Below, one piece after another: positions 14,121 to 64,000 of a stretch of 64,000 bases of DNA. The notes below the pieces were generated by a model. It was not told the origin of the DNA. It did no database searches and saw only the letters and a program-made list of their open reading frames with translations. Made by a program: the position numbers and the translations under genes. The stretch's first letter is position 1. Each line of letters begins with the position of its first letter. The stretch lies in sequence record NC_048046.1, one strand, 5' to 3'.

Positions 14121-14196
14121 TGGCGATCCCTACTGGACTCGAACCAGTACCCGCCCTTTAGAAGAGGGCTGCCCTCTCCGGTTGGACCAAGGGACC
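14121..14196 (-). tRNA. tRNA-Arg(UCU)
   Basis: Reverse complement folds fully: acceptor GGTCCCT/AGGGATC-G-CCA, anticodon arm GCCCT-CTTCTAA-AGGGC, T-arm ACTGG-TTCGAGT-CCAGT; 76 nt. Confidence 0.9.
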
Positions 14197-36502: not shown

Positions 36503-36621
36503 GGGGTCTCCTTATTGATCGTCACCGTGACCAGTAAAGAAACAACATGACGCGCGCAAGCGGAAAATTCAATTATGAGTTAACCGCTAACGGGCGCCGC
36601 CCCCGCGAGGCAACCGATCCC

Positions 36622-45558: not shown

Positions 45559-45594
45559 CCCCACCAGCAAGGTGTCCTTTGCTCCTCTGGTGCG

Positions 45595-46145
45595 GGGACC
45601 CTTCGAAATTAGGGTAGAAATAGGCTAAAAAATAACTAAGAATTTCAGAGCCCGGCCCCGACCCCGAGCGCTCATCTACATTTGGTGCCAATTTCGACAT
45701 CACCCCATAGATGTGGGGCAAATCTTGGGCTCTAGACACCTGGGATTCTGCGGGGCGCGTTAACCATGTTTGTTTACGTTAATGCACCCTCGGCCGGTAA
45801 CCCTAATTCGTAGCCTTAAAATCCCCCGACTTTACCTGGAGTATGGCCCAGGCACTACCCGGTCAGACCGCTCCGGTATGGCCGCGAGATCGGCGCGTCG
45901 ACAGCCTCAGCGGCCTGTCTGCGCCCTGACAGCCGCCGGCGCCTGCCGACAAACCTACGGACCTCAGCCACCAAACCTACGGAGTCCGGCGATCGAGGTC
46001 CGCAGGTTGGGGGACCCTTAGAAATTGACCGGGGGACCCTTCAAAATTCACCCACCAGGGACCCTGGAAATTTCACCGGGGGACCCTTCGAAATTCTGCC
46101 TCCGGGGACCCTAGGAAATTCTGGAGCCAGGGACCCTGGAAAATT
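45595..46145 (+). repeat. GGGACCCT-N2/3-AAATT direct repeats x7
   Basis: Starts 45595, 46011, 46033, 46058, 46080, 46105, 46130. Confidence 0.9.
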
Positions 46146-46323
46146 CACCCAGAATTTGGCCGGATCACCGGCCTATTTAAGCCCAACCCTCAGATCGGCA
46201 TAAATATCGGCGATTTTACCCCATTTTCGGCCCAAAAACCCTTAAAAATCAGCTTTTTAGTCCCATTTCAGCATCGGCAACGCCCGCTCCGCGCCCTGAC
46301 TGACCGCAGTCATCCTTCAGCGC

Positions 46324-46546
46324 AAATGTGACTCACCAACCTGTCGTCACAATTCCTCCCACGTTTTCAACACGTTACAGAGTCACGTCTCAAATCCGGC
46401 CACGCCCAGCCCGATCCGGTCATCCGGCCAAACCTTAATCCGGCCATATCCGGACATCGCCTCGTCCCAGAAACTTCAATGAAATCAATAAACCCTCCAC
46501 ACCAAACGTGACTATCCGGACATATCCGGCCACGCAAACGTGACTC
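46324..46546. repeat. AAAYGTGACTC (GANTC-containing) cluster 1 with interspersed ATCCGG x7
   Basis: 46324-46334, 46380-46390 (reverse), 46504-46514 (variant), 46536-46546. Confidence 0.75.
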
Positions 46547-46583
46547 TCGACATATTGCTGCACCGCAGCATAGCCCCAGCCCG

Positions 46584-46632
46584 TACAACCCATTTCGGTT
46601 GTATTTCCGCTTTACAACCAATAACGGTTGTA
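46584..46632. promoter_or_regulatory. tandem palindromic operators TACAACC-N6-GGTTGTA x2
   Basis: 46584-46603 and 46613-46632. Confidence 0.7.
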
Positions 46633-47049
46633 TCTGCCCAGGCACATCCCCTCATCCCTGTCAACCCCACCTACCTGCGACCACCTCGCAGTCCTGATTT
46701 GGCAGAAACGAGACTGTGTCGCCGGCGCCGCGCCCCTGCGTTATCGTGCCGCGCTTGCCAGAGCGCCAGGATCGTGCCCTACTGTCGATCGGGAGCCGGC
46801 CTCCCTGGCTCAAGTGCTTCGGCGTAGCGGGAAGATCGAACCCAGCCCCGTGACTCGCTGCAATGCCGCCTTGAGCGACCTCGATCGTCTCTCCCAAGCG
46901 ATATCGAGGTCAGGCCGGCTCCTATCCCACCTCCAGGTCACCCAAAACAGGGCTAGTGGCGCGGATTCACCCGTTTTTGGGCTAGTCTGGGCTCAAAACA
47001 GCCTAAATCGGGCGAAAAACTCGACAAAACGCCATTTTATTCGCAAAAC

Positions 47050-47169
47050 TTGACGCGATTCCATTAATTTGACGCGACGTCATTCCATTTCGCCAACTTG
47101 ACACGACGCCATTTCATTTCGCCGACTCGACATGACGCCATTTCATTCTCTTGACGCGACGCCATCCCG
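47050..47169 (+). repeat. five iteron-like repeats TTGACGCGACGCCATT...
   Basis: Starts 47050, 47069, 47098, 47127, 47151. Confidence 0.8.
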
Positions 47170-47202
47170 TTCTGCCCGGCGCTCGACCACCGCCCAGGTC
47201 GG

Positions 47203-47430
47203 TTAAGGTAAACGTCAGGCCCGTTAACCATGATCGTTAGGGTTAACGCCCAGGTAGGGTTACGAATTAAGGTAAACGCGGAGTTAGGGTTAACGTTCGT
47301 TAAGGTTAACACCACGTCGCTCGGCTAACAGTAGTAGTGTTAACGTGCAACGCACTGTTAGGGTTACGAATTAAGGTTAACGCGCCCGGCGGTCATACCG
47401 GGTAATACTTAACGGGCGTTAGGGTTAACG
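47203..47430. repeat. dense cluster of TTAA(C) half-sites
   Basis: About a dozen TTAA in 230 bp, as GTTAGGGTTAAC and TTAAGGTTAAC units; TTAACCAT at 47224. Confidence 0.75.
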
Positions 47431-47434
47431 CCCT

Positions 47435-47506
47435 AAGAGCGCGCAGCCTCGCCGTTGCGCCCCTACGGTTCGAAGAGCCCGGCCCTGCCGGGTCCTGCCC
47501 GGCTAC
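47435..47506 (-). ncRNA. putative structured small RNA, copy 1
   Basis: Invariant 26-nt core; downstream of the minus-oriented box 47530-47544. Confidence 0.6.
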
Positions 47507-47573
47507 CTCTACACCCTAGCGGCTATTTCTTAACAAAACGTAAACGCCCGACACTTTCGCGCCGGGCGTCTCG

Positions 47574-48487
47574 TTATGCGTCGTCCGCTTGCGCGGCGGC
47601 GCCGTAGTCGTGTTGATCCCATAGGACGCCCAGCGTTTGGTCAGGGCTGAAATGGGGGCAAACCGTTTCGATTGTGTCGTAAGTCTCCCGGAAGGCGAGC
47701 GCGTCGTCATCCTGGAGCCAAACCGACGTTTTGGCGGCCTTGTTGCGCAGCGTGTACGCCGCGCCGTTGCCGTAGCTGTCAAGGGCGAAGCGTTCGCCCT
47801 CCGATATGCGAATCGGGCCTGAGTACATGGTCAGCACCCCGTCGGGTCGGCCTTGGCGTAGCGCCAGCGCTCGCCGTCATGCCAAAGCCCGGTTGAGTGA
47901 ACCGTTCCGTACTCGCGAATCTCGCGACGGGCGGTTTCGGGGTCGATTCGGTCGTATCGCCACCCCTTGCCGGCCGAGTCTTCGGAGGCTTGCGCCTCGC
48001 GTAGCTCTTTGGCCGTCATTTCGAAGATGTGGCGGGAGTAGCCGACGATTTCACCGGCCTCTTTCATGGGAATTCGGCGCATGACGTACATGTCGCGTTC
48101 TCCGAAGGCGCCGGGCGTTTCCGCCCGGCGCTAGGTTACCAGAGCGCCCAGAGAATGAGCGCGGCGAGTAGCAGGGGCGTAAGCTTGATCAAGCTACAGC
48201 CCCAAGGCATGGGGGACGCCCCAAACGGCCGCCGCGTTGCGCGGGCGGGCGTCAAGGGCCAATCGCCACCGGTAGAGGTATTCTCGCGCCGCCGCTTGTT
48301 CGGGCGTCCGGCCGTGTCCGATACGCTCCGCCATGCGGGTTGCGACGTCGGAGCCGGGAACCTTGCGCACCGGGTCGGAGCACATGTCCGCGAAGAGCGC
48401 GCACGCCTCTTTGATTGCCGGCGCGTTGTCCGCGAAGGACTGGCGCAAGAAATCGACGAGAGGGACGCGTTTAGGCGTTTCGTTCAT
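47574..48487 (-). CDS. three small cassette genes (47574-47837, 47831-48091, 48194-48487)
   Basis: ORF track; fed by the minus-oriented box 48555; bidirectional hairpin near 47545-47570. Confidence 0.6.
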
Positions 48488-48658
48488 AGGGCCTCACGAT
48501 GTCAAAGAGCGCGGCGGGGTTGTCCGCCGACCCCTGCAATCTCGCACCTATTTCTTAACAAGACGTTAACGGCCGAATCTTTTTTGCGTTTACGTTTTGT
48601 TAAGGAATGGGCGTTAGGTTGCTCTCGACGGCGCAACCCGCGCCCCTGGAGCAAGGCC

Positions 48659-49066
48659 ATGTTTTCGAACCTCCCGCCGCACCTCTTCGTTTCGTCCGCT
48701 GGCGGCGACCTCTTCGACACCCGCGACCCGGATTGGAATTTCAAGCCGCCGCTTCGCCGCGCCTATTCGACGGCCGCCGACCCTATCGAGACGCTTTCTC
48801 AGGTCAAGGCGGCCTTGCGGGCGGGTCCTTACGCTTGGCCGGGCGGGTATCCCCTGTATTTCGTCACCCGCGACGGCGCCGCCCTGAGTTTCGACGCCGT
48901 GCGCTCGCAATTCGCCAGCGTGGCGGATGACTTCATGTCGGACTCCTCGACGGGCTGGCGCGTCTGCCGTGTTGAAATCAACTATGAGGATTCCGACCTG
49001 CGATGCGACCACACGGGGAAAGCTATCCCCGCCGCGCACGGTGACGACGAAGACGAACCGGCTTAA
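48659..49066 (+). CDS. cassette gene, AWPGGYP-motif protein
   Basis: Leader family A plus CCTGGAG RBS; YAWPGGYPLYFVT.DG..L....VR..F ... C..T motif. Confidence 0.75.
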   Translation: MFSNLPPHLFVSSAGGDLFDTRDPDWNFKPPLRRAYSTAADPIETLSQVKAALRAGPYAWPGGYPLYFVTRDGAALSFDAVRSQFASVADDFMSDSSTGWRVCRVEINYEDSDLRCDHTGKAIPAAHGDDEDEPA

Positions 49067-49132
49067 CCTTTTGTTAAGAAATAGCCGGTAGGGTGAAACC
49101 TGCCGGCGCATCCCGCGCCCTGGAGCCTGCTT

Positions 49133-49426
49133 ATGTCGCACGTCTATGACATCGAATATACCGACACGTTCGCCGGGGAGGCGAATTACTCATGGGTTCG
49201 CCGGGCGACCGTGACCATGCCAGAGCTAACCCATTACGGGTATGACGGCGGTTCGAACTACTCCAAGGCGAACAAGGTTTTTAACCGCGAACTCATGAAG
49301 CGCGCCAAGGCCGCCATGGGCCTGACGGGCGTCAAGGGCGTCTCGACCACGCACGGGGACACCCTGGAGTTTCGCCCCTACGGCTCCGCGACGGTCCTTT
49401 TCGCCAACTATCGCGAAATAGACTGA
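49133..49426 (+). CDS. cassette gene, TDTFxGEANYSWV-motif protein
   Basis: Leader family A plus RBS; motif recognised by eye. Confidence 0.75.
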   Translation: MSHVYDIEYTDTFAGEANYSWVRRATVTMPELTHYGYDGGSNYSKANKVFNRELMKRAKAAMGLTGVKGVSTTHGDTLEFRPYGSATVLFANYREID

Positions 49427-49491
49427 CCACGACGCCCGGCGCCTGGACGGCCGCCGGGCGTTCGCTTGCCCAGCCCGTTAACCATGTTTTT

Positions 49492-49562
49492 GAAAAGCGC
49501 CCAGCCTCGCCGTAGCGCCCCTACGGTTCGAAGAGCCCGGCCCCGCCGGTCCCGCCGGCTAC
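49492..49562 (-). ncRNA. putative structured small RNA, copy 2
   Basis: 59 nt identical to copy 4; downstream of the minus box 49586. Confidence 0.65.
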
Positions 49563-49689
49563 AGGTCCAATCTAGCGCTCATTCCTTAACAAACCGTAAA
49601 CGCGAGAATCTTTTTCGTGTTTACCTTTTGTTAAGAAATAGGGTCTAGTGTTCTCGTGTCGGGCGGATCGGCCGCCCTGGAGAACCTGA

Positions 49690-51630
49690 ATGCAAAACAT
49701 GCCCAAGCATGACCGCGAAGTCATCTGCGCCATCGTTACGCACGCCCTGGCGCTCGGCTATGAAGTCGCCTGCGCTGATACCGAACTCGACTGGACGACT
49801 GACCCGGCCGCGATCTTCGCCGACCTCGGCGAGTGCGACGAAGAGCGAATCAGCTTCCGCAAGCCCGGCGACCCGACGCGCAAGCATTGGGTTTATCTGG
49901 TCTACGGGAACGGGGAAGGCGAAACCGTCTGCGACTACCGCGCCGACGCTGAAACCCGCGAAATCCTCGCCGTCGCCGACGCCCTGGCCAGCGTGCAAGA
50001 CATGGAAGCGCTCGCGCTCCAGCACCGCAAGCCCTTCACGGAAGACGTGGGCGGCGACCTGCAACTGTCCATCGCCTGGACCGGGACTGGTTTCATGTAC
50101 GGGCTCGCCCGTGGCCCGGACGCGCCTTCGCTGGACCTTCGGCGCCTGCAAGCGGTGTCTTGGCTCGCCACGCGCCCCGCCGACGACTACCGGAGCGCCG
50201 CCACCGTTGACCAAGTCGTCGCGGTCATGGCGGAAGTCGACAAGGTCCCGCACCTGATCGAACGCGCCGCCTAAATCGAACGCCCCGGAATCTTTTTCCG
50301 GGGCGTTTACCTCTTGTTAAGAAATAGCCGTTAGGTTGCTCTTGTGGCGGGACGGTCCCGCCCTGGAGAAGACCCGATGAACGAAGCCCAAACCAACGCC
50401 GCCGCCGCGATCAAGACCACGGGTGAAACGATCCTGGCGAAGATCGAAGCGGCCCGCGCGGAAGTCGCGGCGAACCCGCACCTCGCCGGCCAATTCTACC
50501 TTGTCGCCGACACGGGCGGCGGTCTGGTCGTGAACTCGGACGGCGCGCACGGCTACCGCCTGAGCGGCATGTTTAGCCCCCTGACTCTGGCCTTCGACGC
50601 CACCGCCAAGGAAGAGGCCTATAAATTCGCCGGTCACTGGAATCGCCGCATAACGCCGGCTCAACGGGCCTCGCGCTGCACCGTCACCGTGACGACCCGT
50701 GAGGAGGCCTGGAGCGCCCTCGAAAAGTCCTGGCGCGAAACCTTCGCCATGATCGAAGCCGCCAAGAAAGACTAAGGCGAGCGCCCCGGCCGAAAAGCCG
50801 GGGCGTTTACCTCTTGTTAAGAAATACCCTCTACAGTCCAACTTGTCGGCGCATCCCGCGCCCTGGAGCAAGTCCCATGCGTAAGCCTCGCCTGTATTTC
50901 GAATATTACGGCGTCACCGTCTGGCGCAACACGTCGCCCGGCTTCGCCCTGCGCTGGAGTGGCGGCGGGTACGCGGCCGACACCCAAGAGGGAATCCGCC
51001 GCCTGATCCGTGAGGGTCGATGAGCAACGCCGCCCGCGCCGAAAAATGGATCGGCCGCGTTGAGCAAGGAGTCGGCCGCGCCCTCGAAAGAGCGGCGCGG
51101 TCCCGGCCCTTCGCTATCGAGGCGGAGGCCGCCCCGTTCCTGGCGACCTTCAAGCGTCAGGCCGCCGGACATGCCGCGCGCGCCCAGACCCTGGCCAGCC
51201 AAGGCGACCGCGTCGGCGCCTTGGTCGAGGCGGGACACGCGCAACGGTGCGCCGCGAACCACGCGAGAATTTTGGAGGCCGTCGACTCCGTCTTAACCTC
51301 TTGTTAAGAAATAGGGGCTAGGTTGCTCTTGTGGCGGGACGGTCCCGCCCTGGAGAACCTGAGATGAGCACCCTTCCCGTTCGGACCCTGGCGCAAATCG
51401 GTCACCTGACTTGGGTGGCCACGCGCAAAGGCGCCGGCTTCGATGCGGCGTTCGCCGATAGTGACGACGCTATCCGCCACGCCATGAACACGGGCGGCAA
51501 CGTCGGCCACACCCTCCTAGGCTGGATTGACATGTTCAGCCCTTCGGCGACGTTCGAAGAGAACCAACGGCAGGTCGCGGCCTTCCTCGAACGCGGCGAC
51601 GAATTCGACCGCGTCATGGGCCAAGGCTAA
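49690..51630 (+). CDS. cassette genes (49690-50274, 50377-50775, 50877-51023, 51020-51307, 51364-51630)
   Basis: Each, except 51020, follows a box, leader hairpin and CCTGGAG RBS; terminators at about 50281, 50782, 51637. Confidence 0.75.
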
Positions 51631-51698
51631 GCCAAGCGCCCCGGCAGAAAAGCCGGGGCGTTTACCTTTTGTTAAGAAATACCCTCTAAGGTGATCAC

Positions 51699-51768
51699 GT
51701 ACCCGGCAGGACCGGGCGGGCCGGGCTCTTCGAACCGTAGGGGCACAACGGCGGGGCTGCGCGTTTTT
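51699..51768 (+). ncRNA. putative structured small RNA, copy 3
   Basis: Occupies an entire cassette slot between box 51661 and box 51794, has no RBS or ORF and ends in a T-run. Confidence 0.7.
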
Positions 51769-51862
51769 CAGCGCCTCGAAAAAGTTCACCGCGTTAACGT
51801 CTTGTTAAGAAATAGCGCCTAGGGTGGCTGTGTGGCGGGACGGTCCCGCCGGAGAAAACGAC

Positions 51863-53379
51863 ATGACCACGCAAGCCGCCCTCGCCGCCCGCCTGGACCG
51901 CGCCGCCCGGATCATCCGGGGCGAAGTCGCCGCCTCCAAGCGGAAAGAACGCAAGGCCCGCCGCGCGTTTTCCCGCGCCCTCGCCGGCATGGACATTCCG
52001 ACCTATGTCGCTTGGCTGAACGATCCGGCCGACTCCTTCGCCCTTACCGACGACGTCGCCCATTGGGCGCAAATCGGAATCACGAACGCCGCGCAACTCG
52101 GCGACTACCTGAACGGGTGCGTTCGTCGGGAAATGGAAAAGGACGCTCGCAACGGTTATTGCGATGACGCCTTTGACGACTACGCCGAACGCGGCGGCTA
52201 CGGCGGCGGCGATGACGGGGAGGGCTACACCTTCGACCGCGACCGCGCCGAAGGGATCGCCGCCGACAAGGCCAAGCGCGACGCCATGCACGAAGACATG
52301 CCGTTTTAACGGTTTGTTAAGAAATAGCGTCTAGAACGAAACCACGGGCGGCGGATCGGCCGCCGCCCGGACCTTCGGAGCCCCGAAAATGTTCCTCTGG
52401 ATTTGGACCGTCGCCACCGACGAACTGACCCCCGCCTATAAGAACCCGCCGGCCGTCGCGCCGGAAGGTTGCCTTTTCCTCATGGCGGCAAACCAACGCC
52501 AAGCGGAACGCGCCCGCGACCTCGCCAAGGCCGCCGGCTAAACCCCTCAATCTGGAGCGCAAGCCCATGACGCAACGCTACCGCCTCGCCGATCAAATCA
52601 AGGTCGCGAACGAGGTTTCGAATCTACTCTATTCGGCCTCCGACGTCGTCGCCGTCGCTGCGCAGTACGAAACGACGCCCGCCGGTCAAGCCAAGCTCGC
52701 CAAGCTGCGAAGCGACCTCATCGGCATGAGCGCCGGCGCCCTGACGCACAAGCCGCCGGCCGCCGTGCTCGAAACCCTCGTTTGGGTTGTCGAGTTGGCG
52801 CAAGATCGCGCTACCGGCGCGGACTTCAACACGCCGCAAGAGGCCCTGGACGAACACGACGCCTTAGCCTTCGTTTGCGACTGGCTGAAGGCTCAAGGTC
52901 AGGACGTGTCGCCGATCATCGGCGCGCAACCGTCTTCCGAAGCGCTCGCTAAGTTGGTAGCGGCTCGCGACGCCGCACAAGCTGAACTCGACGCGCTGGA
53001 GGTTCCGGCCCTGCCTGAAGCGGTTGACGTCGTCGCCGACGTTCTCCGCTACAAGGACGCCCAAGGCGACGCGGACGACGTCCTTTCCGCCCTGGCGCGC
53101 GCCGGCTTCAAGGTCGTTCGGGAAGGGGAGGCCTAGCCTATGGCGCAAACCTTCCCCCACGTGCTGGCGTCGCAGCACTTCCCCGGCCGGGGCGCTACGG
53201 CGCCCGGATCGGTCGTCCTTCGCGACCTAGGCCCGACCGCGCCGCATCGCTACGTCACCCACTTCCGCAACGAAGAGGACCCGGCGAAGCCGTATCACGT
53301 CATGGGCCACTATTTCGCCGAAGACGAGGAAGCGGACGCACAAGCCGATTTCCGTAAACGCTGCGCTCGCGGCTACTGA
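51863..53379 (+). CDS. cassette genes (51863-52309, 52567-53136, 53140-53379)
   Basis: Boxes 51794 and 52306, leader hairpins, RBS. Confidence 0.7.
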
Positions 53380-53407
53380 TCAACCCTCAGGACAAGGAGT
53401 CCAGACC

Positions 53408-53599
53408 ATGACCGACAAGACCCCCGCCAAGCCGAAGAAAGCGCCCGCCAAGGCCAAGGCCGCCCCGGCTCCGAAGGAAGCCGCCGCCGCGCCCAAGACG
53501 CCCCGCAAGGCCAAGGCCGCCCCGGCTCCGGCCGCTCCGCGTCCGAAGGTGCGCGGCCTGAAAGCCGCCCTTTTCGGGGGCGCGTTCAACCGCCTGTAA
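53408..53599 (+). CDS. 63-aa Lys/Ala/Pro-rich histone-H1-like protein
   Basis: AAGGAG RBS; KAKAAPAP repeated twice, PAKPKK. Confidence 0.7.
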   Translation: MTDKTPAKPKKAPAKAKAAPAPKEAAAAPKTPRKAKAAPAPAAPRPKVRGLKAALFGGAFNRL

Positions 53600-53692
53600 A
53601 ACTTCCCGGCGTTTACCTCTTGTTAAGAAATAGGAGGTAGAACATAAACACGGGCGGCGGATCGGCCGCCGCCCGAACTCCCTGGAGGCCCC

Positions 53693-54376
53693 ATGGCCCG
53701 TAAGCTGACTCTCTCGCTGCTCGCGAACCCCGATTTGAGCATGGCGAACGTCACGACCACGTCGCAGCGTATCGAGGACTGGACCGACACCCTTTATCCC
53801 GAAGACGGGAGCGAAGGCGCTGAAATCGTCCTGCCGCCGGTCACGTTCGGCGCCGTGTATGAGCGCGCCGAAGACCTGCTGACCAAGTCGCAGCAACGCA
53901 CCGCCGAACGGTCCCCGAATCGCGAAGTCTCGCCCGACCTCGCCGAACGTTTCGAGGGGAGCGACGGCCACGACGAATGGCGGGCGTCGTTTGACCCCAT
54001 GATGAACTATGTTTGGCCGGTCGCGCTTCCCTACCGCGCCGAAGCCTCGCAAGTCGCCGCGCTGCTGCAAGAATTCTGCCCGGTCATGACTCTGGTCAAC
54101 TTCGGCGACGACTCGCCGTTCTGCTCCGAGTCCCACGCCTTCGCGCTCTCGGGCGGCGGAATGAACCTCGCCGACCAAATCGCGACGGCCTATCTCTGCG
54201 CCGGCGTCGTTCCGCCCTCGTCTCTGCTGGAATCGCTCCCCGGCGTGATCAGCGATTATCAACGCGACAAGGTCGCCCCGGTCCTGCGCAAGGCCTATCG
54301 GAAAGCCGCCGATTACCACGCGTACCGGGCTAAGGCGATCCGCCGGGAAGCCGGCCGCGTCTTCACCAAGTCCTAA
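53693..54376 (+). CDS. cassette gene, hypothetical (LSGGGM.LA..I..AY motif)
   Basis: Box 53612, leader family B, CTGGAGG RBS; terminator near 54385-54410. Confidence 0.75.
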   Translation: MARKLTLSLLANPDLSMANVTTTSQRIEDWTDTLYPEDGSEGAEIVLPPVTFGAVYERAEDLLTKSQQRTAERSPNREVSPDLAERFEGSDGHDEWRASFDPMMNYVWPVALPYRAEASQVAALLQEFCPVMTLVNFGDDSPFCSESHAFALSGGGMNLADQIATAYLCAGVVPPSSLLESLPGVISDYQRDKVAPVLRKAYRKAADYHAYRAKAIRREAGRVFTKS

Positions 54377-54439
54377 GCCTGGAGGCCCGGCGCACCCCGC
54401 CGGGCCTTTAGCGTGTCTGGCGCGTTAACCATGTTCTAG

Positions 54440-54509
54440 AATTGCGGGCAGGTTCGCCGTAGCGCCCCTACGGTTCGAAGAGCCCGGCCCCGCCGGTCCC
54501 GCCGGCTAC
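54440..54509 (-). ncRNA. putative structured small RNA, copy 4
   Basis: 59 nt identical to copy 2; downstream of the minus box 54534. Confidence 0.65.
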
Positions 54510-54635
54510 AGGACTCACCCTAGACCCTATTCCTTAACAAACCGTAAACGTGAAAAAGAATCTCGCGTTAACCTCTTGTTAAGAAATACCCCCTATGGTC
54601 CTCTCGACGGCGCACCCCGCGCCCTGGAGTCTGAC

Positions 54636-55241
54636 ATGACCCTTCCGACCCTTTACCTTCGCCGCGAACCGACGTCGCAAGGCGTCCCGAACGTCGATGA
54701 CTCGCCGGAGCGTTTCGACATCGTGGCCTATCGCGACAAGGCGATGACTGACGCCGCCGGCCGCTGGCCTTGGTTCTATCAGTCCAAGCCCCGCAAGGGC
54801 GCGAAAACCGTCATGCTCAATTGCATGCGTCACCGCGCCGCGTGGCGCCCCGATCATCACGGCGAAACCCCGTTCATGCTGGAAACGCGCCGCGCCATGA
54901 CGGCCGCGACGATGCAAATGGACGCCCTGATTTCCCGCCTGCACGCCGAAGGCCGTAAGCTGGCGCTCGCCGGGACCGTGGCCTATTCCAAGGCGCACCC
55001 GCGCCGAACGGTGACGTTCGTTAGCGCCATGGGCTCCAATTGCCTGCACGTCACGCCGGGCGGGACGTCCTATCGCGGCGAATACCAACTGACCACGGGC
55101 GACCATGGCGACTACCCGCCGCCGGCCTGGATGGAAGAGCTAGACCGCCTTTGCGACGACTACCGACTCGGGACGTTCCCGGATAACCTCAAGGTCGTGT
55201 GCAAGGGTGGAAAGATCATCGAGCAAGTTTCCAACTGGTAA
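54636..55241 (+). CDS. cassette gene, hypothetical
   Basis: Box 54568, leader family A, RBS. Confidence 0.7.
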   Translation: MTLPTLYLRREPTSQGVPNVDDSPERFDIVAYRDKAMTDAAGRWPWFYQSKPRKGAKTVMLNCMRHRAAWRPDHHGETPFMLETRRAMTAATMQMDALISRLHAEGRKLALAGTVAYSKAHPRRTVTFVSAMGSNCLHVTPGGTSYRGEYQLTTGDHGDYPPPAWMEELDRLCDDYRLGTFPDNLKVVCKGGKIIEQVSNW

Positions 55242-55307
55242 CCTTTTGTTAAGAAATAGCCGGTAGGTTCATCCCTGCCGGCGCATCCCGCGCCCCTGGA
55301 GTCGAAC

Positions 55308-55958
55308 ATGCCCCGCACCGTCACTAAGGAAGTTTTCCAGTACGACGAACTGACGCCGAAGGCCCAAGAAAAGGCCCGCGACTGGTTCCGCGACATGCTG
55401 GACCGCACCGCCGATAACGAATTCGCCGAACCCGTCATGGAAGAGGCCGAACGCGTCGCCGGCATGCTCGGAATCACCTTCAAGCCGACGCGCGGCGGTG
55501 ATCCGGTATCGTGGTCGGGCTTCTACAGCCAAGGCGACGGCGCCAGCTTCGAGGGCCGTTACGCGGCCCCGGAAAAGCCGGCTTTCGAGACGATCAAGGC
55601 CGAATTCCCTACGGAATTGAAGTTGCAAGCCATAGCGGCCGAACTGGACGCCTTCCAAGATCGCCACGGCCGCCGACTGGTCGCGGACATCACCCGCAAC
55701 GGCCGGAGCAACTACGTTCACGCCTATACCGTCGATATCGACGTTTGCGAGCAAGACGAGGCCGCCGACGACGGACTCGTTAACGTTTCGCCGACGACCG
55801 AAAAGGCCATCGCCGACGAACTGCGCAATTTCATGGGCTGGATTTGGGATCAACTCCGCGAAGCCTATGAAGGCGACCGCGAGGACGAAACCGTCGCCGA
55901 CAATATCCGCGCCAACGAATACGAATTTGAGGCGGACGGAACCCGGACCCGCGACTAA
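55308..55958 (+). CDS. cassette gene, WSGFxSQGDGASF-family protein (often auto-annotated as antitoxin; function unproven)
   Basis: VFQYDEL...AQEKARDW, WSGFYSQGDGASFEG, I.ANEYEF..DG. Confidence 0.7.
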   Translation: MPRTVTKEVFQYDELTPKAQEKARDWFRDMLDRTADNEFAEPVMEEAERVAGMLGITFKPTRGGDPVSWSGFYSQGDGASFEGRYAAPEKPAFETIKAEFPTELKLQAIAAELDAFQDRHGRRLVADITRNGRSNYVHAYTVDIDVCEQDEAADDGLVNVSPTTEKAIADELRNFMGWIWDQLREAYEGDREDETVADNIRANEYEFEADGTRTRD

Positions 55959-56008
55959 CGCAACCCGGCCGGCGCTTCGGCGCCGGCCTAGCCTGGAAAG
56001 GCCCCGCA

Positions 56009-58595
56009 ATGAACATGGCTCGCAAAGAACACGCCGGAAGCTACCAAATCGGGATTTGGGGCGTTGAGCGCATCCGACGCGGCGTCTGGGAAGCCCGCGC
56101 CAACGGGCCGGGTACGCTTGGCGACGGCTCGCCGCATACGTATCCGACGCTCGACGCGGCGCACCTCGCCTTGACCGGCGAGCCCCGGCGAGAAATTCGC
56201 GGCTCTTAACCTGTTGTTAAGAAATAGCCGCTAACCTCTAATCATCGAACAACGGGAGACACCCCCCATGATGACCAACCCTCACGCCCTGGCGATCCTC
56301 GCCGCCGCAAACAAGATTCTTCCCCTGACGCACCTGCACCCGTGCGACCAACGCGCGCCGGCCGTCGATATCATCGGCGACCTGTTCAAGATCGCCGACG
56401 ACATCGACGCCGCCGCCCCGGCTTCGGCCGTGACCCTGCCGGCCGGTAACGAGACGCTGGCGAAGCTGGGCGCCGCCGTCGCCCTGGCGCGCCTGGAACT
56501 CGAAAGCGCCTATCAGCGGACCGAAAGCATTAGCGAGCGCCACCGCCTCGCGCCGCTCATCGCCACCATGTCGGACGCCCTCAAGGCGTACCGCGCCGAC
56601 CCGGCGACGCCCAAGGCTCCGGCCGCGCCCCTGCCGCACGCCTTCGCCACCATTCCGGACGGTTCGGCCCTGCAACGCGCCACCGCCGCCGGTATCGCGA
56701 TCTTTCAGGCCGAAGGCTCGACGTTCTACACGCCCGGCCCGTCCGCCAACTTCACCCGCGACGACTGGCGCGGCCCGTACTACGGCGCGGCCGAAGCCGC
56801 CCGCGCCGCCCTGGCCGAACGCAACGGGAAGGCGGCCTAAGCCATGCTGAATCCGATCCTTCGCGAACGGCGCGAGCCGGTCGATATCGTCCTAGACGCC
56901 CTCAAGGGCCGTATGGGCGAAGCCGACGCTTCGGAGGCCTGCGACTCCGTGTTCCTGGCCCTGCAAAACGAGGGTTACGCCGTCGCCCCCTTCACGATTG
57001 AAGGCCGCCGCCTCACGCAAACGGATACGGGCGTCAAGCTGGGCGACGCGCTCCGGACGCTCTTCGAAGCGGTCCCGAACTACGCCGTTCGGTCGCAACG
57101 TCTCGCCGACGCCGTGAGCGTCGCTAGCGGGTACGTCTATCAACCCCGGTATCGCTTCCTCGCCGACGACGGCACGGGCGCGGCGATCCTGACCAACTGC
57201 GACGACGGCCGGAGCGTTTATTTCCAGCCCGGCCCGGACGCCGACGAGGCCCGCGCCGAATTCGAGCGTTCGCAGTACACCGACGAGACGGCCGAAGGCT
57301 TCGGCGTCGCCGGCCTCTGGCGCGCCAAGGCCGCCGCCTATTTCAATGACGATCCGGAAGGGCTCTAGCCGATGAGCTACGACACGAAGACTCTCGCCGC
57401 GCAAACGATCATCGACGCGCACACCGCCGGCCGTGGCCTGGAGGAAGGCCAAAGTCGGGCAACCGACCTCTACCACGTTCTCGACTCGCTGCTGACGTGG
57501 AGCGACTTCCACGGCGTGGACTTTGACGCCACGCTTTCGGAGCTACGCGCCGACCTCGCCGAAGAGCCGCCTTGCGCCGGCAATGTCGGCCGGGTCGTCA
57601 TCACGCTGGAAACCGGCGAAGGCGCCCGCGAGGAATTCGTGTCGCGTCACTACACGATTGCCGAAGCCGTCGCCGCCCTGGATGGCCCCGGTATCGACGC
57701 CAAGGCCCGGCATGAGGGCCGTTACACAATCGCCGCGCCGCACGGGCTGGGCTCGGACCTTGAAGCCGTCCCCCTGGCGCGCAAGCTGGGCTATCAGGGC
57801 AAGGATTGCCCCGCCGCCGCCTTCGCCTTCCTCTCTACCCGGATTCCCTGATCATGGCCAAGCGCAAGCCCTACACCCCGAACCCGTTCGCCCGCTACAG
57901 CGTCGGCGGCCTCTCCGCCGAAGCCAAGGCCGCCCGCCGGCCTTCCCTGGCCTGCCTTCGCGCCATCGTCCGGGAAGCCGCCGCGCTAAAGGCCGAAGCC
58001 GTGGCGCGCCTCGCTGATCAACGGTGGATGCGCGGCGCCTCGCTCATGGCGCAAAGCTGGACCCGTGACAACGCGGCGATGAGCGTTCACGCCCTAGCCC
58101 GGAAGAACCTCGAATATCTCCGGATGCGAGCGCACCTCACGGTTTCGCCAGAGCGGGCCGGCTCCTACGCGCCCGCCGGCTGGCCTATCGACCGCCCGGC
58201 CCTGGAAAAGTGGCAAGCCCTCAACCCGCCGCCCCCGGCCCGTGACTATGACTCGCTCATCGGCCGCGCCGCCCGCGCCTCCGGCTGGGCTTAAGGAAAG
58301 GATTCCCATGTCGGACCTGATCAAGCTCAACCCCGAACCCGCCAACATGACCGCCGTCAAGCTGGGCGCCGTCATCCTGTATTTCAGCTATCAGACCCTT
58401 GTCGGGTTCCGTTGCCCGCATCTGGGCACGGTGTCCAATCCGGACGGCAAGGGCTACGGCCGAACGACCGCCGGCCACATGACGAAATTCGGCCTCGCCA
58501 GCGCTCGGACCACGGCGACGGAATCGGATTTCCAGACGCTCGCGCTTCGGGCCGTTCAAGGCCACGTCCGCGACATCGGCGAATTGCTGATCTAG
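56009..58595 (+). CDS. cassette genes (56009-56209, 56268-56840, 56844-57368, 57372-57851, 57854-58294, 58308-58595)
   Basis: ORF track, close packing, box 56206. Confidence 0.65.
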
Positions 58596-58609
58596 TCGCG
58601 CCCGTTCAA

Positions 58610-58710
58610 GAGTCACGTTTCAGGCCTAACCTGACTCCAACAGAGTCACATTTTCCCGAAACCGTGACTCCGCCTCGATTTCCCGTCACGTTCTGGTCTA
58701 AACGTGACTC
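58610..58710. repeat. AAAYGTGACTC (GANTC) cluster 2
   Basis: Five GANTC at 58610, 58633, 58643, 58666, 58706; the outer pair forms an exact 11-bp inverted repeat. Confidence 0.85.
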
Positions 58711-58743
58711 GTCCTAGTTCCTCAGTAAAAACAAGGAGTTATC

Positions 58744-58818
58744 TTGCGCTTCATCGAACACATGCTTGAAGGTTCCGGCGTCCTTTTCGCAATCGTCATC
58801 CTTTTCCTGCTGCATTAA
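58744..58818 (+). CDS. 24-aa hydrophobic peptide MRFIEHMLEGSGVLFAIVILFLLH
   Basis: AAGGAG 5 nt before TTG; stop lies inside box 58815; not in the ORF track. Confidence 0.5.
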   Translation: MRFIEHMLEGSGVLFAIVILFLLH

Positions 58819-58901
58819 CCTCTTGTTAAGAAATAGCGGGTAGAGGTAGAGGGGTCAGGCGCACACCGCGCCGGCCCCTCTTTCTGTTGGAGCGCAGACC
58901 A

Positions 58902-59393
58902 ATGCCCGACTACAAGACGAACGACCCCAAGGGCTACATGGGCGACCCCCGCCGGGGCGCCGCCATGGGCCGTCCGACCTACGCGCCGGACGCCGCCGGC
59001 TGGACCGTGGAAGGCCTGAAGACGGCCGCCGCCCTCGAAGAGGACCGCGCCCGGATCGCCGAAGAGCAACGCGAGAACCGCCCCGGCGACGGCTATAAGC
59101 GCCAGTGCTGGGAAGCCGCCGCCGCGTCGTTCCGCAAGGAAGCCGAACGCCTCCGCTCGCTCATCCCGGCCGCCCGCGCCATGCTCGCCGCCTCGCCGAA
59201 GATCACCCTTCAACGCGTCCGCCTGGACTCGGGCGGCTACGACCGCAACGGGACCTATTTCGGGCATGACCTCCCCCTGTATTGGGCGGCGGACGAATCC
59301 GGCGACTATGACGCGACGTTCCGCGCCGCCGACCGCAACGCGGCGAAGGCCATCGTTCGCGAGACGTACCCCGCCGCCCGCTTCTACAACTAG
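58902..59393 (+). CDS. cassette gene, VRLxSGGYD..G.YFG..PLYWA-motif protein
   Basis: Box 58815, GGAG RBS; motif recognised by eye. Confidence 0.75.
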   Translation: MPDYKTNDPKGYMGDPRRGAAMGRPTYAPDAAGWTVEGLKTAAALEEDRARIAEEQRENRPGDGYKRQCWEAAAASFRKEAERLRSLIPAARAMLAASPKITLQRVRLDSGGYDRNGTYFGHDLPLYWAADESGDYDATFRAADRNAAKAIVRETYPAARFYN

Positions 59394-59470
59394 CCGGCGT
59401 TAAGGGGTTGTTAAGAAATAGCCGGTAGGGTCACACCTACCGGCGCACCCCGCGCCCTGGAGAAAATCGG

Positions 59471-60823
59471 ATGACCTCGCAACTCTGCATCGCCGACGAA
59501 AACGCCGCCCTGGATTTCCTGGCGCGCGCCGTCCCCGCCCTCTGTGACGCCGGCATTATGCCGCCGACGCTGGATATTCTGGATTCGCTCGCCGCCAACC
59601 CGAACGCGTACGGTCTTAGCCGCGTCCCGGCCCTGGCGCCGCTCGCCGCCGAATGGGCCGGACCGTATCAGACGCAAGCGAATGACGGCGAAGGTCCGAC
59701 CACGGTCCGGGCGCTGATCGTCGCCGCGCTGGGCGCCGATGAGTCCGGCAACTTCGATATCGGGTTCCGCACCTACGCCGTGAACGACTCGGAACACTGG
59801 AATCTTGCCGGGACTCCTCTGGAGGGCGTGCCGGCCTATAGCCTGTATCTGATCCGCGAAGGCGAGCAAACTTACATGTGCTCGCTCACGCCATCGAGCT
59901 ACGCCTATGGGATTCAGAACGTGTTCCTCTATCCCGATCAAGACGGCTTGCCGGCTGTCAATGAATACGGGCAAACGGCGGTTGAAGCGTATATGGACGC
60001 CGAAAACCCCGAATATGAGGGCGTCGAAGATACCTATTTCGGGTATATGGGCGACCGCGCCGCATTCGACCGCCGCGAAGCCGAAGAGGGCGACGTTTCA
60101 GAGCGCCTTAGCTTCGATAAGTCGGTTTTCCGTGTGGACCTCTCCACGCTGGACGGGTTCGCCGCGTCGCCGGCCAATCCCCGCGAAACGACCGCGTTCG
60201 CCGACTTCGAAACCCTCGCCGCCGCCTTCTACAAGGCCGCGTGCGACTCGGCTTGGGAGGACGCGAAGGAATACGTTAGCGGCAACGCTACCGAACCGCG
60301 CATTTTAACGGGTTGTTAAGAAATAGCCTGTAGGTTCTCCCCATGGGCGGCGGATCGGCCGCCGCCCGACCGGAGCGCCAGACATGGCTATCTCGACCGC
60401 CGCCCTTAACGCTCACGTCGCCGAAGTGGCGGAATGTGAGTCCGACCTGAACGAAGCCTTTGAGGCTTTCGACCGGGGCGAAGCGCCCGACCGTGGCGAC
60501 TGCGATTATGCGTTTCTGAAGCTGGAAACGGCGGAAATGCACCTCGCGCAATTCCTGGCGCCGGTCTTGGCGTCGCCGATCTTTGTTCACGCCTAGGAGG
60601 GCCTGACATGTCCAAGCGTCCTGACTTCACCGGCCGGCTTCCCGTCCGCGACGACGTGCAAACGGTGACGTGTCACCGCCCGCCGACGCGCTCGGAAATC
60701 AACTTCGGCCACGGCGCGACGCATTACCGGGATTTCCCGGTTGCGGCCGTGTGCTGGGCGGGAACCCGGTTCAAGAAAACGTGGTTCGTCGCTGACGACG
60801 GGCTTCGCTACTACACGTCTTAA
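59471..60823 (+). CDS. cassette genes (59471-60319, 60384-60596, 60608-60823)
   Basis: Boxes 59400 and 60305, leaders A and B, RBS. Confidence 0.7.
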
Positions 60824-60900
60824 CCTCTTGTTAAGAAATAGGCCCTATGGTCTATTTCGAGGGCGGCGGATCGGCCGCCGCCCGAACCGGAGTAGACGCG

Positions 60901-61332
60901 ATGTCCGCCCGCTTTCAAACCGCCGCCGCCGCCCGTCAATTCATGCTCGGCGGTAACGCCGTGGTCACGCTGCAAAGCGAAAAGACCGGCGCGCGCTTCA
61001 CCTACAAAATCAAGGCCGCCCCTGACGGTGCGGTGTCGTTCGTTAAGCTCCTGACGGGTCAGGACAACGAATCGGATTACGCCTATATCGGGTTGATCCG
61101 GGGCGCTCAATTCGCCCGGACGGCTAAGGCTCGCGTCACCGCCGACGCCCCTAGCGTCAAGGCCCTGGAATGGGCCTGGAAGGCGCTAAGCGCGGATCGC
61201 TTGCCCGATACCCTGGCGATCTTCCATGAGGGCCGTTGCGGGCGCTGCAATCGCCTCCTGACGGTCCCCGAGTCCATCGAGTCGGGCTTCGGCCCGGAAT
61301 GCGCCGGCCGCGTCCTGCGCCAAGCCGCCTAA
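60901..61332 (+). CDS. DUF6011-like Zn-finger protein
   Basis: C-terminal HEGRCGRCNRLLTVPESIESGFGPEC; box 60820, leader family B. Confidence 0.75.
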   Translation: MSARFQTAAAARQFMLGGNAVVTLQSEKTGARFTYKIKAAPDGAVSFVKLLTGQDNESDYAYIGLIRGAQFARTAKARVTADAPSVKALEWAWKALSADRLPDTLAIFHEGRCGRCNRLLTVPESIESGFGPECAGRVLRQAA

Positions 61333-61378
61333 CCTCAACGGGCGGGCCTCGCGCCCGCCCAAGCCCTGGAGTCCTGCC

Positions 61379-63844
61379 GTGGCCTATTATCCGCCCGTCA
61401 AAGGTCAAGTTCACCGTTTCCGCGACTCGGTCGCCCTGTACGTCGGGACCGGCGAGACGGTTTACGTTTCCGCCGCCGACGCTCGCAAGATCGCCCGCGC
61501 CCTGAACAAGGCCGCCAAGTCCTGCACCTCGGAGCCGTTCGCCCAAAGCTCCGGCCTGACGTTCTCGTTTTCGTTCGCGGACGGTCGGGAAAAAGACCTT
61601 CCGCGTTAACTTGTTGTTAAGAAATGCCGTCTAGGGTGACGGCATGGGGCGGTGGATCGGCCGTCGCCCTAGCCTGGAGCGAAAGCCCATGACCAAGACC
61701 AAGCGCCCCGCCGGCTACTACTCGAAAGCCGCCCGCGAAGCCCGCGCCCTGGCTCGCCAGCGCCGCGCCGCCGCCCGCCTCAACTGGTCGGACGAAAAGC
61801 GCCACAAGATGGCGACCAAGTCCGCCAAGTTCTTCGCCAAACACGCGGCCCGCGCCGCCCTGGCGGGGAACGAGAAAGAAACCCGCCGCCTATCGGTTCA
61901 CATGACCCGATTCGACAACGTGCGCCGCATGGTCGGCGCCGTGTTGGCGGTCCGCGCCGCTCGCTTCCGCATCGAGGCCGCCGCGTAAGGCGGCCTCACA
62001 ACCCCTAGAAAGGACACCTCTTGAAACACGCCTCCGAAGCGCTCGCCGTCGTCGCCGTGTGCGGACTCCTGGCCTTTTGGCTCTGGAATGACTCGCATCC
62101 GGTCATGGTCGCCGTGGGCCTGGACTGTCAGGGCGAAACCGTCCGCGTCTACGGCGCCGACGACGCCCCGGAAGCCTCCAAGGTCTGCCGGACCGTGGAA
62201 ATCCACAAGGTCCCCTAGAAAGTTCGGCCTCTTAACCTCTTGTTAAGAAATGGCCTCTAGGGTGACTACATGGGCGGCGGATCGGCCGCCGCCCGAACCG
62301 GGAAAATCAAGATGACCCGTCAAGCTAAGCCCTTCGCTCACCTGAAGCCCAAGACCGGCGAAACCAAGGCGCAAGCCTTGATCCGACTCGGTGATTTCTC
62401 GCGCTTCGGCATTATGGCCCAACTGCTGATCATGGAAGCTCTCGGCCGCAAGTTCGGCGCTATCGAGTACGGCCCCCGTGATACGAACATGGGCAAGCTC
62501 AAGCAATTCCTGAAGGCCGCCCCGAACGACACCGTTGCGGCCGTGGAAGAGTACGCCGGCGCCGTCGCCGCTATGGGCCTGGAAAAGGTCCGCGAACAAT
62601 TCAAGGGCGGCGCGGGCGCGCTGATCCACCCCGACTCCTGGCATGGCGTGGCGGTGGAAATCAAAACCGCCCTCGACGCCGCCAAGGCCTAACCCTTCCC
62701 CTGTAGAGCGTACCGGGGCGGCGGATCGGCCGCCGCCCAAACCCCTAGGACTGGAGTCCTTCACATGTCCCGTTCGTTCCGTCACTCCGCCGCCTTCGAA
62801 GATACCCGCGCCGAATTCGCCGCCCGGAAGAACGCCCGCGAAAGCCGCCGCCGCGAATTCGAATCCATGGGATTCGATAACGCCGACGCCCTGGCCGTGC
62901 GCCGCTTCCATCGCCCCTACAAGGGCCGGAATCGGTCGGTCCTGGACATCGAAGCCTAGGCCCGGAAACGGCCCTTCTAGAGCCCCTACAGAAGGCCCGC
63001 CCTAATCGGCGGGCCTTTACTGTTTGGTAAGACCTTCCCCGCTAGAGTGTGTGCATGGACAAGCCCGCTCTCTTCGAAGTCACCACGCGCCACGCCGACG
63101 GATCGGCTACCCGTGGGATCGTCCCCGCCGCTCTGGTCAAGACGGCCTATGCGCAAGCGCTGCGCAAGGCCTGGAAGGCTAAGGCGGGCGACCTCGTGAC
63201 CGTGCTCCCCTACGGGGTGGCCCTGCCGAATACCCCTGCCCAAAGCGAAAGGCTTTTCTCGCTTTAACCTTTTGTTAAGAAATGGCCTGTAGGGTACACC
63301 CATAGGCAACCCCTGGAGCTACCCCCGATGACCCTGCATCACACCCTCATGGAAGCCCTGGACACGGCCCAGATGAACGGCGCTACGGTCGACCCCCTGC
63401 ATGCGGACATCCGCCGCGCCCTGCGCCTTGCCCAGATGGCGGGCGCTACGCTGGACACCCCGGAAGAGGTGGCCGCCGCTGTGCTGCGCATGAAGGTTGC
63501 GCAGTCGATGAACCGCCGTCGCAAGGCCTAGGAAGAAAGGCGTTCGCGTTTACCTCTTGTTAAGAAATAGGGGGTAATGTCTCTACATGGGCGGCGGACA
63601 TCCCCGCCGCCCGAACCTCGGAGCCCCTGCCATGTTCCCCCGTAACGTCGCCATCGCCGAAGCTGCTCAGTTCTCGCAAGTGTCCATGGCGGACTATCGC
63701 GAGCATGTCGCCGAAGAGCGTCACGCCATGCGCGCGAAGCTGGCGAAGCGAGCCAAGCTCAAGGCGGACATCAAGGCGGGCGCGTTCGCCTTCGCCCTGG
63801 CCTTCGTGGCTGCTGGCGTGGTTCTCGCTCTGGGCGTGTTCTAG
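61379..63844 (+). CDS. cassette genes (61379-61609, 61689-61988, 62021-62218, 62312-62692, 62765-62959, 63049-63267, 63328-63531, 63632-63844)
   Basis: Boxes 61606, 62232, 63016, 63264, 63549; leaders; (CCT)GGAG RBS. Confidence 0.7.
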
Positions 63845-64000
63845 GGGGAGGGGTCGCCCTCGGCGCGAGTCGAGGGTACCTAAAAGAATCCATCTCGACC
63901 CCTTGACAAAATCGACGGGCCGGGGGAGGGTCTTGTTTCAAAATGGGACGGCCAGGGACCCAAGGCCACCCTCCCTCGTTAACCATTTTTCCGGGGCGCC

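Follow-up and report, generated by a model that had tools for sequence, protein, structure and literature searches.

A promoter array of the CtrA type confined to the terminal repeat of Caulobacter phage CcrPW, and its probable control by the host cell cycle

The 64,000-nucleotide stretch of sequence record NC_048046.1 analysed here (the window) forms the final 64 kb of Caulobacter phage CcrPW, with 100% identity to MH588545.1 (308,141 bp), a window coordinate being the MH588545.1 coordinate minus 244,141. It carries an array of 25 repeated promoters of the type used by CtrA, a cell-cycle regulator of the host, and the entire array lies inside the right copy of the direct terminal repeat (DTR; 45594-63999), annotated in MH588545.1 as repeat_region 289735-308140, one of two identical terminal sequences of 18.4 kb. 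Taking all the evidence together, we consider it probable that these promoters depend on phosphorylated CtrA (CtrA~P), that they become active in the swarmer cell without delay and that their repeated units double as homology patches for gene cassettes. According to this explanation, host RNA polymerase would use the 25 promoters only with CtrA~P, the CtrA box would replace the -35 element, and each promoter would start a short transcript, giving 20 rightward mRNAs, one leftward mRNA of three genes and four non-coding units of about 70 nt. Since the DTR is present at both genome ends, the array would be carried by the first end to enter the cell, irrespective of which one this is, and would be present in double dose; it would be expressed as soon as the phage infects the piliated swarmer cell, which is rich in CtrA~P, and would fall silent once CtrA is cleared. 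The core of this finding, that DTR genes of a phage are wired to the host cell-cycle regulator, is already known, because Mascolo et al. 2022 (PMC9437464) described the DTRs of phiCbK-like ('LPEG') phages, CcrPW named among them, as rich in CtrA sites that lie between genes and upstream of genes of unknown function. The first-pass annotation of this DNA was thus right that such sites had been reported before; the phenomenon is the same, and nothing essential differs in CcrPW.

An exact scan of the window for the CtrA box, TTAA-N7-TTAA, found 14 copies, all within 48555-63278, whereas 100 dinucleotide shuffles of the window contained 0.04 copies on average and one at most. When up to one mismatch was allowed, 26 sites were obtained (shuffle mean 2.41, maximum 9), namely 25 in 47530-63563 and a single one at 36569 that is without any extended promoter features. 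The 14 perfect and 11 one-mismatch boxes of the array agree with the numbers given in the first-pass annotation, and the absence of full boxes that it had noted for the first 47 kb extends to the whole remaining genome: in the other 271 kb of CcrPW, scanned separately in five pieces, there were zero exact boxes and zero position-weight-matrix matches of at least 18 bits, compared with 42-57 bits for the 25 sites themselves. As all 25 sites are inside the DTR, their distribution is skewed in the same way as in LPEG phages. Almost every box occupies a gene junction, as had been claimed: 24 of the 25 are directly upstream of an annotated gene or of a conserved non-coding unit, and the remaining one precedes an unannotated open reading frame (ORF). 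The box pattern is therefore confirmed as real, far above chance and restricted to the DTR.

Such a concentration of sites raises the possibility that the array acts chiefly as a sink, in which the fifty strong sites of a genome, their number raised further by replication, would titrate CtrA away from host targets and from the replication origin and so reprogramme the cell cycle, with cassette transcription being secondary. The 25 sites in each of two repeats may be set against the approximately 100 CtrA-activated host genes mentioned in PMC11264516, and the promoter-less left part of the DTR has further clusters with TTAAC-type half-sites. However, each site keeps a constant spacing to a -10-like hexamer, as do 21 sites to a leader and an ORF, which is more than a pure sink would need. 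Titration as the main role is therefore quite unlikely in our view, although it is not exclusive of the explanation favoured here.

The 25 sites, 21 rightward and 4 leftward, were aligned, and the counts given below are column counts over this alignment. Three of the leftward sites each have a rightward partner 34 bp away and form divergent pairs with it. The downstream half-site is invariant in all 25 sites, together with the three letters before it and one letter after it, and the recurring 12-mer that had been described around this half-site was found again, with TTGTTAAGAAAT exact at 22 sites and TTGTTAAGGAAT at the other three. The upstream half-site is more variable (TTAA at 14 sites, TTTA at 10 and GTAA at one). 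The proposed -10-like element was also recovered as a hexamer that begins 11 nt past the box and has T at position 1 in 24 sites, A at position 2 in all 25 and T at position 6 in 22; about 12 nt upstream of the box there is an A-rich patch, with A at each of two positions in 18 sites. Relative to the inferred start site, the box occupies the -35 position at every one of the 25 sites. No canonical -35 element could be observed at the right distance, and a sigma-70 consensus scan found none of the 25 sites. Ordinary sigma-70 promoters thus do not explain the array, a result which fits an activator-dependent promoter.

Binding and activation by CtrA come from published work on phiCbK, in which probes of the gp005 and gp018 promoters were shifted by purified CtrA~P, the shift was lost on mutation of the box, and the corresponding lacZ fusions lost 29-fold and 5-fold activity in a temperature-sensitive ctrA strain (PMC9437464). 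Because these reporters were active in uninfected cells, a phage factor is not required. At 52306, CcrPW has a box that is letter for letter the 15-mer box of phiCbK gp005 and gp018. Moreover, the box, a spacer of 11-12 nt, the -10-like hexamer and the leader hairpin are common to the DTRs of phiCbK, Ccr2, BL64, BL57 and Colossus. Between orthologous promoters of CcrPW and Colossus, identity is 97% in the box and 98% in the 5 nt that follow it, compared with 73-83% in the flanks, and this contrast indicates that the box and the 5 nt after it are under purifying selection. By homology, these shared features argue strongly for CtrA control of the CcrPW array, and the designation of the sites as CtrA-type promoters, already made in the first-pass annotation, appears to be appropriate. 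The CcrPW promoters also resemble the Caulobacter host promoters controlled by CtrA (late-S-phase and G1 classes) in that one TTAA-N7-TTAA box overlies the -35 position and, here by homology, in their dependence on CtrA~P. They differ from the host promoters in lying on phage DNA, in being repeated 25-fold with near-identical flanks and in starting a leader with a 5' hairpin.

Some features weigh against direct control by CtrA. First, the five letters past the box are specific to the Colossus lineage; as the invariant 12-mer reaches 5 nt past the box in this lineage only, some other factor could read the extension. Second, the imperfect upstream half-sites remain imperfect in the Colossus orthologues. 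Third, the binding and activation data stem from phiCbK homologues, and the start sites in CcrPW are placed from the sequence. The resemblance to CtrA sites might accordingly be incidental, the longer invariant word being recognised by a host sigma factor on its own or by a factor that the phage encodes or brings in its virion; the strongest conservation does lie in the 12-mer, including the part beyond the box, and ten sites have TTTA in place of a perfect upstream half-site. Nevertheless, we judge this to be highly improbable, because phiCbK promoters without the 5-nt extension bind CtrA and lose binding when the box is mutated, because they are active in uninfected wild-type cells and not in the temperature-sensitive ctrA strain, and because the elements common to three phage genera are precisely the box, the spacing and the -10-like hexamer. 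The lack of a canonical -35 element at the right distance also argues against it.

The transcription units defined by these promoters do not follow the arrangement of one promoter per gene that had been assumed: 20 rightward units carry the 33 rightward annotated genes gp453-gp485 (48659-63844, plus strand, all annotated as hypothetical proteins), with one to five small genes in each and a single gene in 12 of them. The remaining promoters serve one leftward unit of three genes and four non-coding units (three leftward and one rightward, from the promoter at 51661). All promoters were located by the box scan, and those at 50306, 50806 and 51661 each abut a terminator hairpin. On the plus strand, perfect boxes are found in the promoters of gp454 (49063-49094), gp458 (51293-51324), gp459 (51794-51825), gp460-463 (52306-52337, with the box identical to those of phiCbK mentioned above), gp465 (54568-54599), gp468-472 (56206-56237), gp473 (58815-58846), gp474 (59400-59431), gp475-476 (60305-60336), gp477-478 (60820-60851), gp479-480 (61606-61637), gp481-483 (62232-62263) and gp484 (63264-63295). 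The plus-strand promoters of gp453 (48589-48620), gp455 (49620-49651), gp456 (50306-50337), gp457 (50806-50837), gp464 (53612-53643), gp466-467 (55238-55269) and gp485 (63549-63580) have one mismatch, as do the promoters of the four non-coding units (47513-47544, 49569-49600 and 54517-54548 on the minus strand and 51661-51692 on the plus strand). On the minus strand, the perfect box of the promoter at 48538-48569, the divergent partner of that of gp453, precedes the leftward three-gene unit (47574-48487), which consists of an unannotated ORF (48194-48487), gp452c and gp451c. This ORF of 97 amino acids, which is absent from the annotation of MH588545.1, shares 77% identity with Colossus gp002 and is served by a CtrA-type promoter and a ribosome-binding site of its own.

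The leaders of the rightward units are similarly uniform. Twenty of the 21 rightward sites are 62-87 nt upstream of an annotated start codon, and in 18 cases the leader begins with a GC-rich hairpin, no more than about 10 nt from the -10-like hexamer, followed by a GGAG-type ribosome-binding site; the leader of gp468-472 is without a hairpin and that of gp484 without a strong one. The order of leader hairpin, ribosome-binding site and small ORF set out in the first-pass annotation therefore holds for most rightward units, but not for the four sites that precede a non-coding unit. In the unit starting at 61606, the leader hairpin has two changes relative to its relatives, both of which yield G-U wobble pairs, and this suggests that the role of the stem is at the RNA rather than the DNA level. 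In about nine leaders (including those after 48589, 49620, 50306, 51293, 54568, 60305, 60820 and 63549), predicted folds show the start of the transcript paired with the GGAG ribosome-binding site around the leader hairpin, and such pairing may sequester this site. Terminators, which were said to occur often, are a more limited feature. A strong terminator hairpin with a T-rich tail abuts about five promoters, whereas the total of terminator-like matches in the region (23 found and 20.6 expected) was not above chance. At the terminators at 50278-50308, 50779-50808, 51634-51663 and, on the minus strand, 47542-47571, the T-rich tail also supplies the TTTA upstream half-site of the promoter that follows, and the TTTA state at terminator-abutting promoters is kept in the Colossus orthologues.

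Four of the 25 CcrPW promoters (eight per genome) are followed not by a gene but by a conserved non-coding unit of about 70 nt. Its copies in the right DTR, identified by nhmmer and alignment, are located at 47433-47503 (minus strand, E=9e-19), 49489-49564 (minus strand, convergent with gp454), 51697-51771 (plus strand, with a T-run at its end) and 54436-54511 (minus strand, convergent with gp464); a T-run ends two of the CcrPW copies in all. Eleven copies are known, four each in CcrPW and Colossus and one each in BL64, Ccr2 and BL57, and each of them has the same promoter at the same distance. Over the 80 columns of their alignment, 41 show no variation and identity averages 85% per column. 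For the DTRs as a whole, identity between CcrPW and the phiCbK group has been put at about 12% in published work; the core of the unit nonetheless stays almost invariant across three phage genera with otherwise largely dissimilar repeats. One copy is convergent with a gp454 homologue in each of CcrPW, Colossus, BL64 and Ccr2.

Compensated changes between copies could be seen by eye in the 5' hairpin of the unit. RNAalifold found no compensatory pairs in the structure predicted from the 11 copies, no covariation was observed beyond the 5' hairpin, and single-sequence folds of the unit were no better than those of shuffles. Searches of Rfam 15 (E <= 1) and ARAGORN gave no match on any of the four CcrPW copies. 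A tRNA-like gene on the opposite strand was also considered and rejected, as there was no ARAGORN match and no fitting stems; weak Rfam matches elsewhere in the array, for example to isrK on GGGACCC repeats, were judged to be chance. In the viral collection, the 21-nt core of the unit matched CcrPW and Colossus only. In the genome collection, it had six matches, GC-rich and with unrelated flanks, that were taken as chance; none was in Caulobacter, and neither a host homologue nor a long exact target was found. With the nhmmer profile, neither phiCbK nor the remainder of the CcrPW genome yielded additional copies. The unit is a candidate small RNA, and a role at the DNA level is also possible. 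It is conceivable, though rather doubtful, that this RNA affects the host as an immediate-early regulator or as a decoy, one possible target being the CtrA/GcrA circuit (which is also tuned by the host small RNA CcnA), within an array that would as a whole be a G1-class, swarmer-specific and immediate-early programme and not a deferred one.

When the array would be expressed during infection is a question on which published observations differ. Delaby et al. (10.1101/739516) reported that the ctrA401 allele at permissive temperature raises late-S-phase CtrA promoters and cripples those of the G1 class. The phiCbK reporters were already crippled at permissive temperature in strain LS2195, which carries the temperature-sensitive allele of Quon et al. 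1996 (PMC9437464). We infer that this allele is ctrA401, as the two papers cite the same 1996 origin, although neither of them states so in those words; if this is correct, the phage promoters behave as members of the G1 (swarmer) class. Expression of the array ahead of other genes, as the first-pass annotation inferred, would follow from its place in the DTR and agrees with this published ctrA401 behaviour. In addition, RNA sequencing of phiCbK infection (PLoS Genet 2023) showed that phage mRNA already accounted for 14% of transcripts at 15 min and that 41% of phage genes peaked by then, these figures being genome-wide rather than specific to the DTR.

On the other side, Mascolo et al. 2022 proposed 'lytic deferment', in which the same CtrA promoters, behaving as late-S-phase promoters blocked by SciP, would be silent in the infected swarmer cell and would fire in the predivisional cell, thereby delaying the lytic programme. 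This proposal comes from the authors of the binding and reporter work themselves (PMC9437464). It is also in line with the block of late-S-phase CtrA promoters by SciP in G1 (10.1101/739516), and with the induction of host promoters that have a single box at -35, which PMC11264516 places mostly in early-to-mid predivisional cells. However, the 29-fold and 5-fold losses of the phiCbK reporters were measured at permissive temperature, where ctrA401 raises late-S-phase promoters, and the early rise of phiCbK mRNA is also difficult to reconcile with silence. Deferment thus appears possible but somewhat unlikely; by analogy with phiCbK, immediate expression is more likely than deferment.

Comparison of the CcrPW and Colossus DTRs provided information about how the array has changed between relatives. 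Of 17 internal ends of homology blocks, nine are inside promoter-leader units, which cover 12.5% of the region (binomial P = 7e-5), so the gene-cassette layout described in the first-pass annotation is well founded. The genes gp455 and gp465, which are found in CcrPW only, each have a promoter copy on either side, both copies aligning to the same single promoter of Colossus, and the module of gp454 and the non-coding unit is present in four phage lineages. We therefore suggest that the repeated promoter-leader units may serve as homology patches through which related phages gain, lose and exchange cassettes. A similar role is known from the T4-type PeSLs (Arbiol et al. 2010, PMC2839356), in which short repeated regulatory units also lie between small ORFan genes of a variable region and close relatives differ at the units. 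However, a PeSL combines a strong sigma-70-like early promoter with a terminator stem-loop, whereas the CcrPW promoter is activator-dependent, its stem-loop is mostly a 5' leader, and a clear terminator is found at about five units only.

Mobility could even be the chief role of the array, with repeated promoter-leader (and partly terminator) units shuffling ORFan genes in the manner of PeSLs and the choice of CtrA being secondary. The breakpoints at units, the flanking promoter copies of gp455 and gp465 and the wide occurrence of the gp454 module all point in this direction, as does a metagenomic contig in which homologous genes follow repeated promoters of the sigma-70 type (L027, described below). 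On the other hand, the restriction of the array to the DTR would be left unexplained, as would the fact that unrelated phages of Alphaproteobacteria independently concentrate CtrA sites, and the small number of units with a clear terminator does not favour it either. We give this reading a modest chance of being right; it is compatible with the CtrA-dependent array proposed here rather than an alternative to it.

The array contains 36 ORFs with a median length of 97 amino acids. Pfam searches of all 36 returned only two families, DUF6011 and DUF6232, and PHROGs gave 19 matches, 18 of them to families without an assigned function. The PHROG label 'DNA ligase' for gp453 (135 amino acids) was rejected, as the profile has only 98 positions and is too short for a ligase. 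Neither PADLOC nor NCBIfam matched any of the 36 ORFs, and no homology to any characterised protein could be found among them with these four resources, nor was any described anti-defence or defence-related family matched. Because no array protein has a recognisable function, the host-takeover or anti-defence role put forward in the first-pass annotation can be suggested only by analogy with the host-takeover module of SPO1 and the first-step-transfer region of T5, and the protein functions lend no support to 'takeover'. Like those terminal-repeat modules (PMC6873191, PMC3556154), the CcrPW array has many small genes in the terminal redundancy with strong promoters and ribosome-binding sites. 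Unlike it, they are driven by ordinary host promoters, and shut-off activity has been demonstrated for several of their proteins, whereas the CcrPW promoters would depend on a cell-cycle regulator.

Two array proteins were further characterised. The product of gp454 (97 amino acids; 49133-49426, plus strand) matched 975 database clusters at E <= 0.001, and the best 120 of them were about 70-85% identical; the family also occurs in phages of Agrobacterium, Pseudomonas and Stenotrophomonas and on one contig of 38% GC. Judged by these matches, its conservation appears to be unusually strong for a phage ORFan. A sequence search of the PDB gave no match for gp454, and a Foldseek comparison of its confident AlphaFold model (mean predicted local distance difference test score, pLDDT, 92.5) with the PDB and viral models found no informative neighbour. 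For gp474 (282 amino acids, isoelectric point 4.1; pLDDT 85.2), Foldseek against the PDB likewise found no informative neighbour. Homologues of gp474 were found in the arrays of two metagenomic relatives. In a 16-kb contig (L027, JGI 3300001199), homologues of gp474 and of the DUF6011 protein lie behind repeated promoters of the sigma-70 type, together with an ArdC-like antirestriction gene. In a 266-kb contig (L026, GCA_030012885.1), a gp474 homologue is part of a similar array of small genes, without the promoter word and with clusters of the 13-mer described below between the genes. The ArdC-like gene of the former contig shows that such arrays can hold anti-defence genes, and the type of promoter appears to be lineage-specific.

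The left part of the DTR (45594-47512) is promoter-less and without annotated genes, and it contains several families of repeats. A repeat of 16-17 nt occurs in seven copies, of the GGGACCCT..GAAATT type, at 45595 and 46011-46146 (for example, GGGACCCTTCGAAATT at 45595 and 46080); its first copy begins exactly at the left boundary of the DTR, and similar copies are present in Colossus and phiCbK. These repeats may be a packaging or terminase recognition array. At 47019-47176 there are five to six iteron-like direct repeats of about 29 bp with a period of about 24-29 bp, where local G+C content falls to 0.576, and these could be an origin or a protein-binding array. They are followed at 47202-47430 by an array of 13-mers, mostly in one orientation (for example, GTTAGGGTTAACG at 47236, 47283 and 47418). 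Such an array lies beside the first promoters in all six phages examined (at about 2000-2104 in L002, 1547-1775 in L003 and about 1970-2210 in L004-L006). Every 13-mer has half-site-like TTAAC words, and a full box with the N7 spacing arises from them in some of the phages only. Outside the DTR, a tRNA-Arg gene with anticodon TCT is located at 14121-14196 on the minus strand, apart from the main CcrPW tRNA clusters.

A link between early phage transcription and a host developmental master regulator is also found in phi29 and Spo0A, a case cited in PMC9437464; Spo0A represses the phi29 promoters, whereas CtrA activates the phage promoters here. Our analysis adds no new principle, as the core has been published. 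What it contributes beyond PMC9437464 is the anatomy of promoter and leader, the structure of the units, the four promoters of the non-coding unit, the absence of boxes from the other 271 kb, the homology breakpoints at the units and a differing reading of expression timing. The timing of these promoters, immediate or deferred, decides between two views of the infection cycle. The region also bears on the roles of approximately 36 ORFan proteins, including the widely distributed and conserved gp454, and on the non-coding unit as a possible small RNA of these phages.

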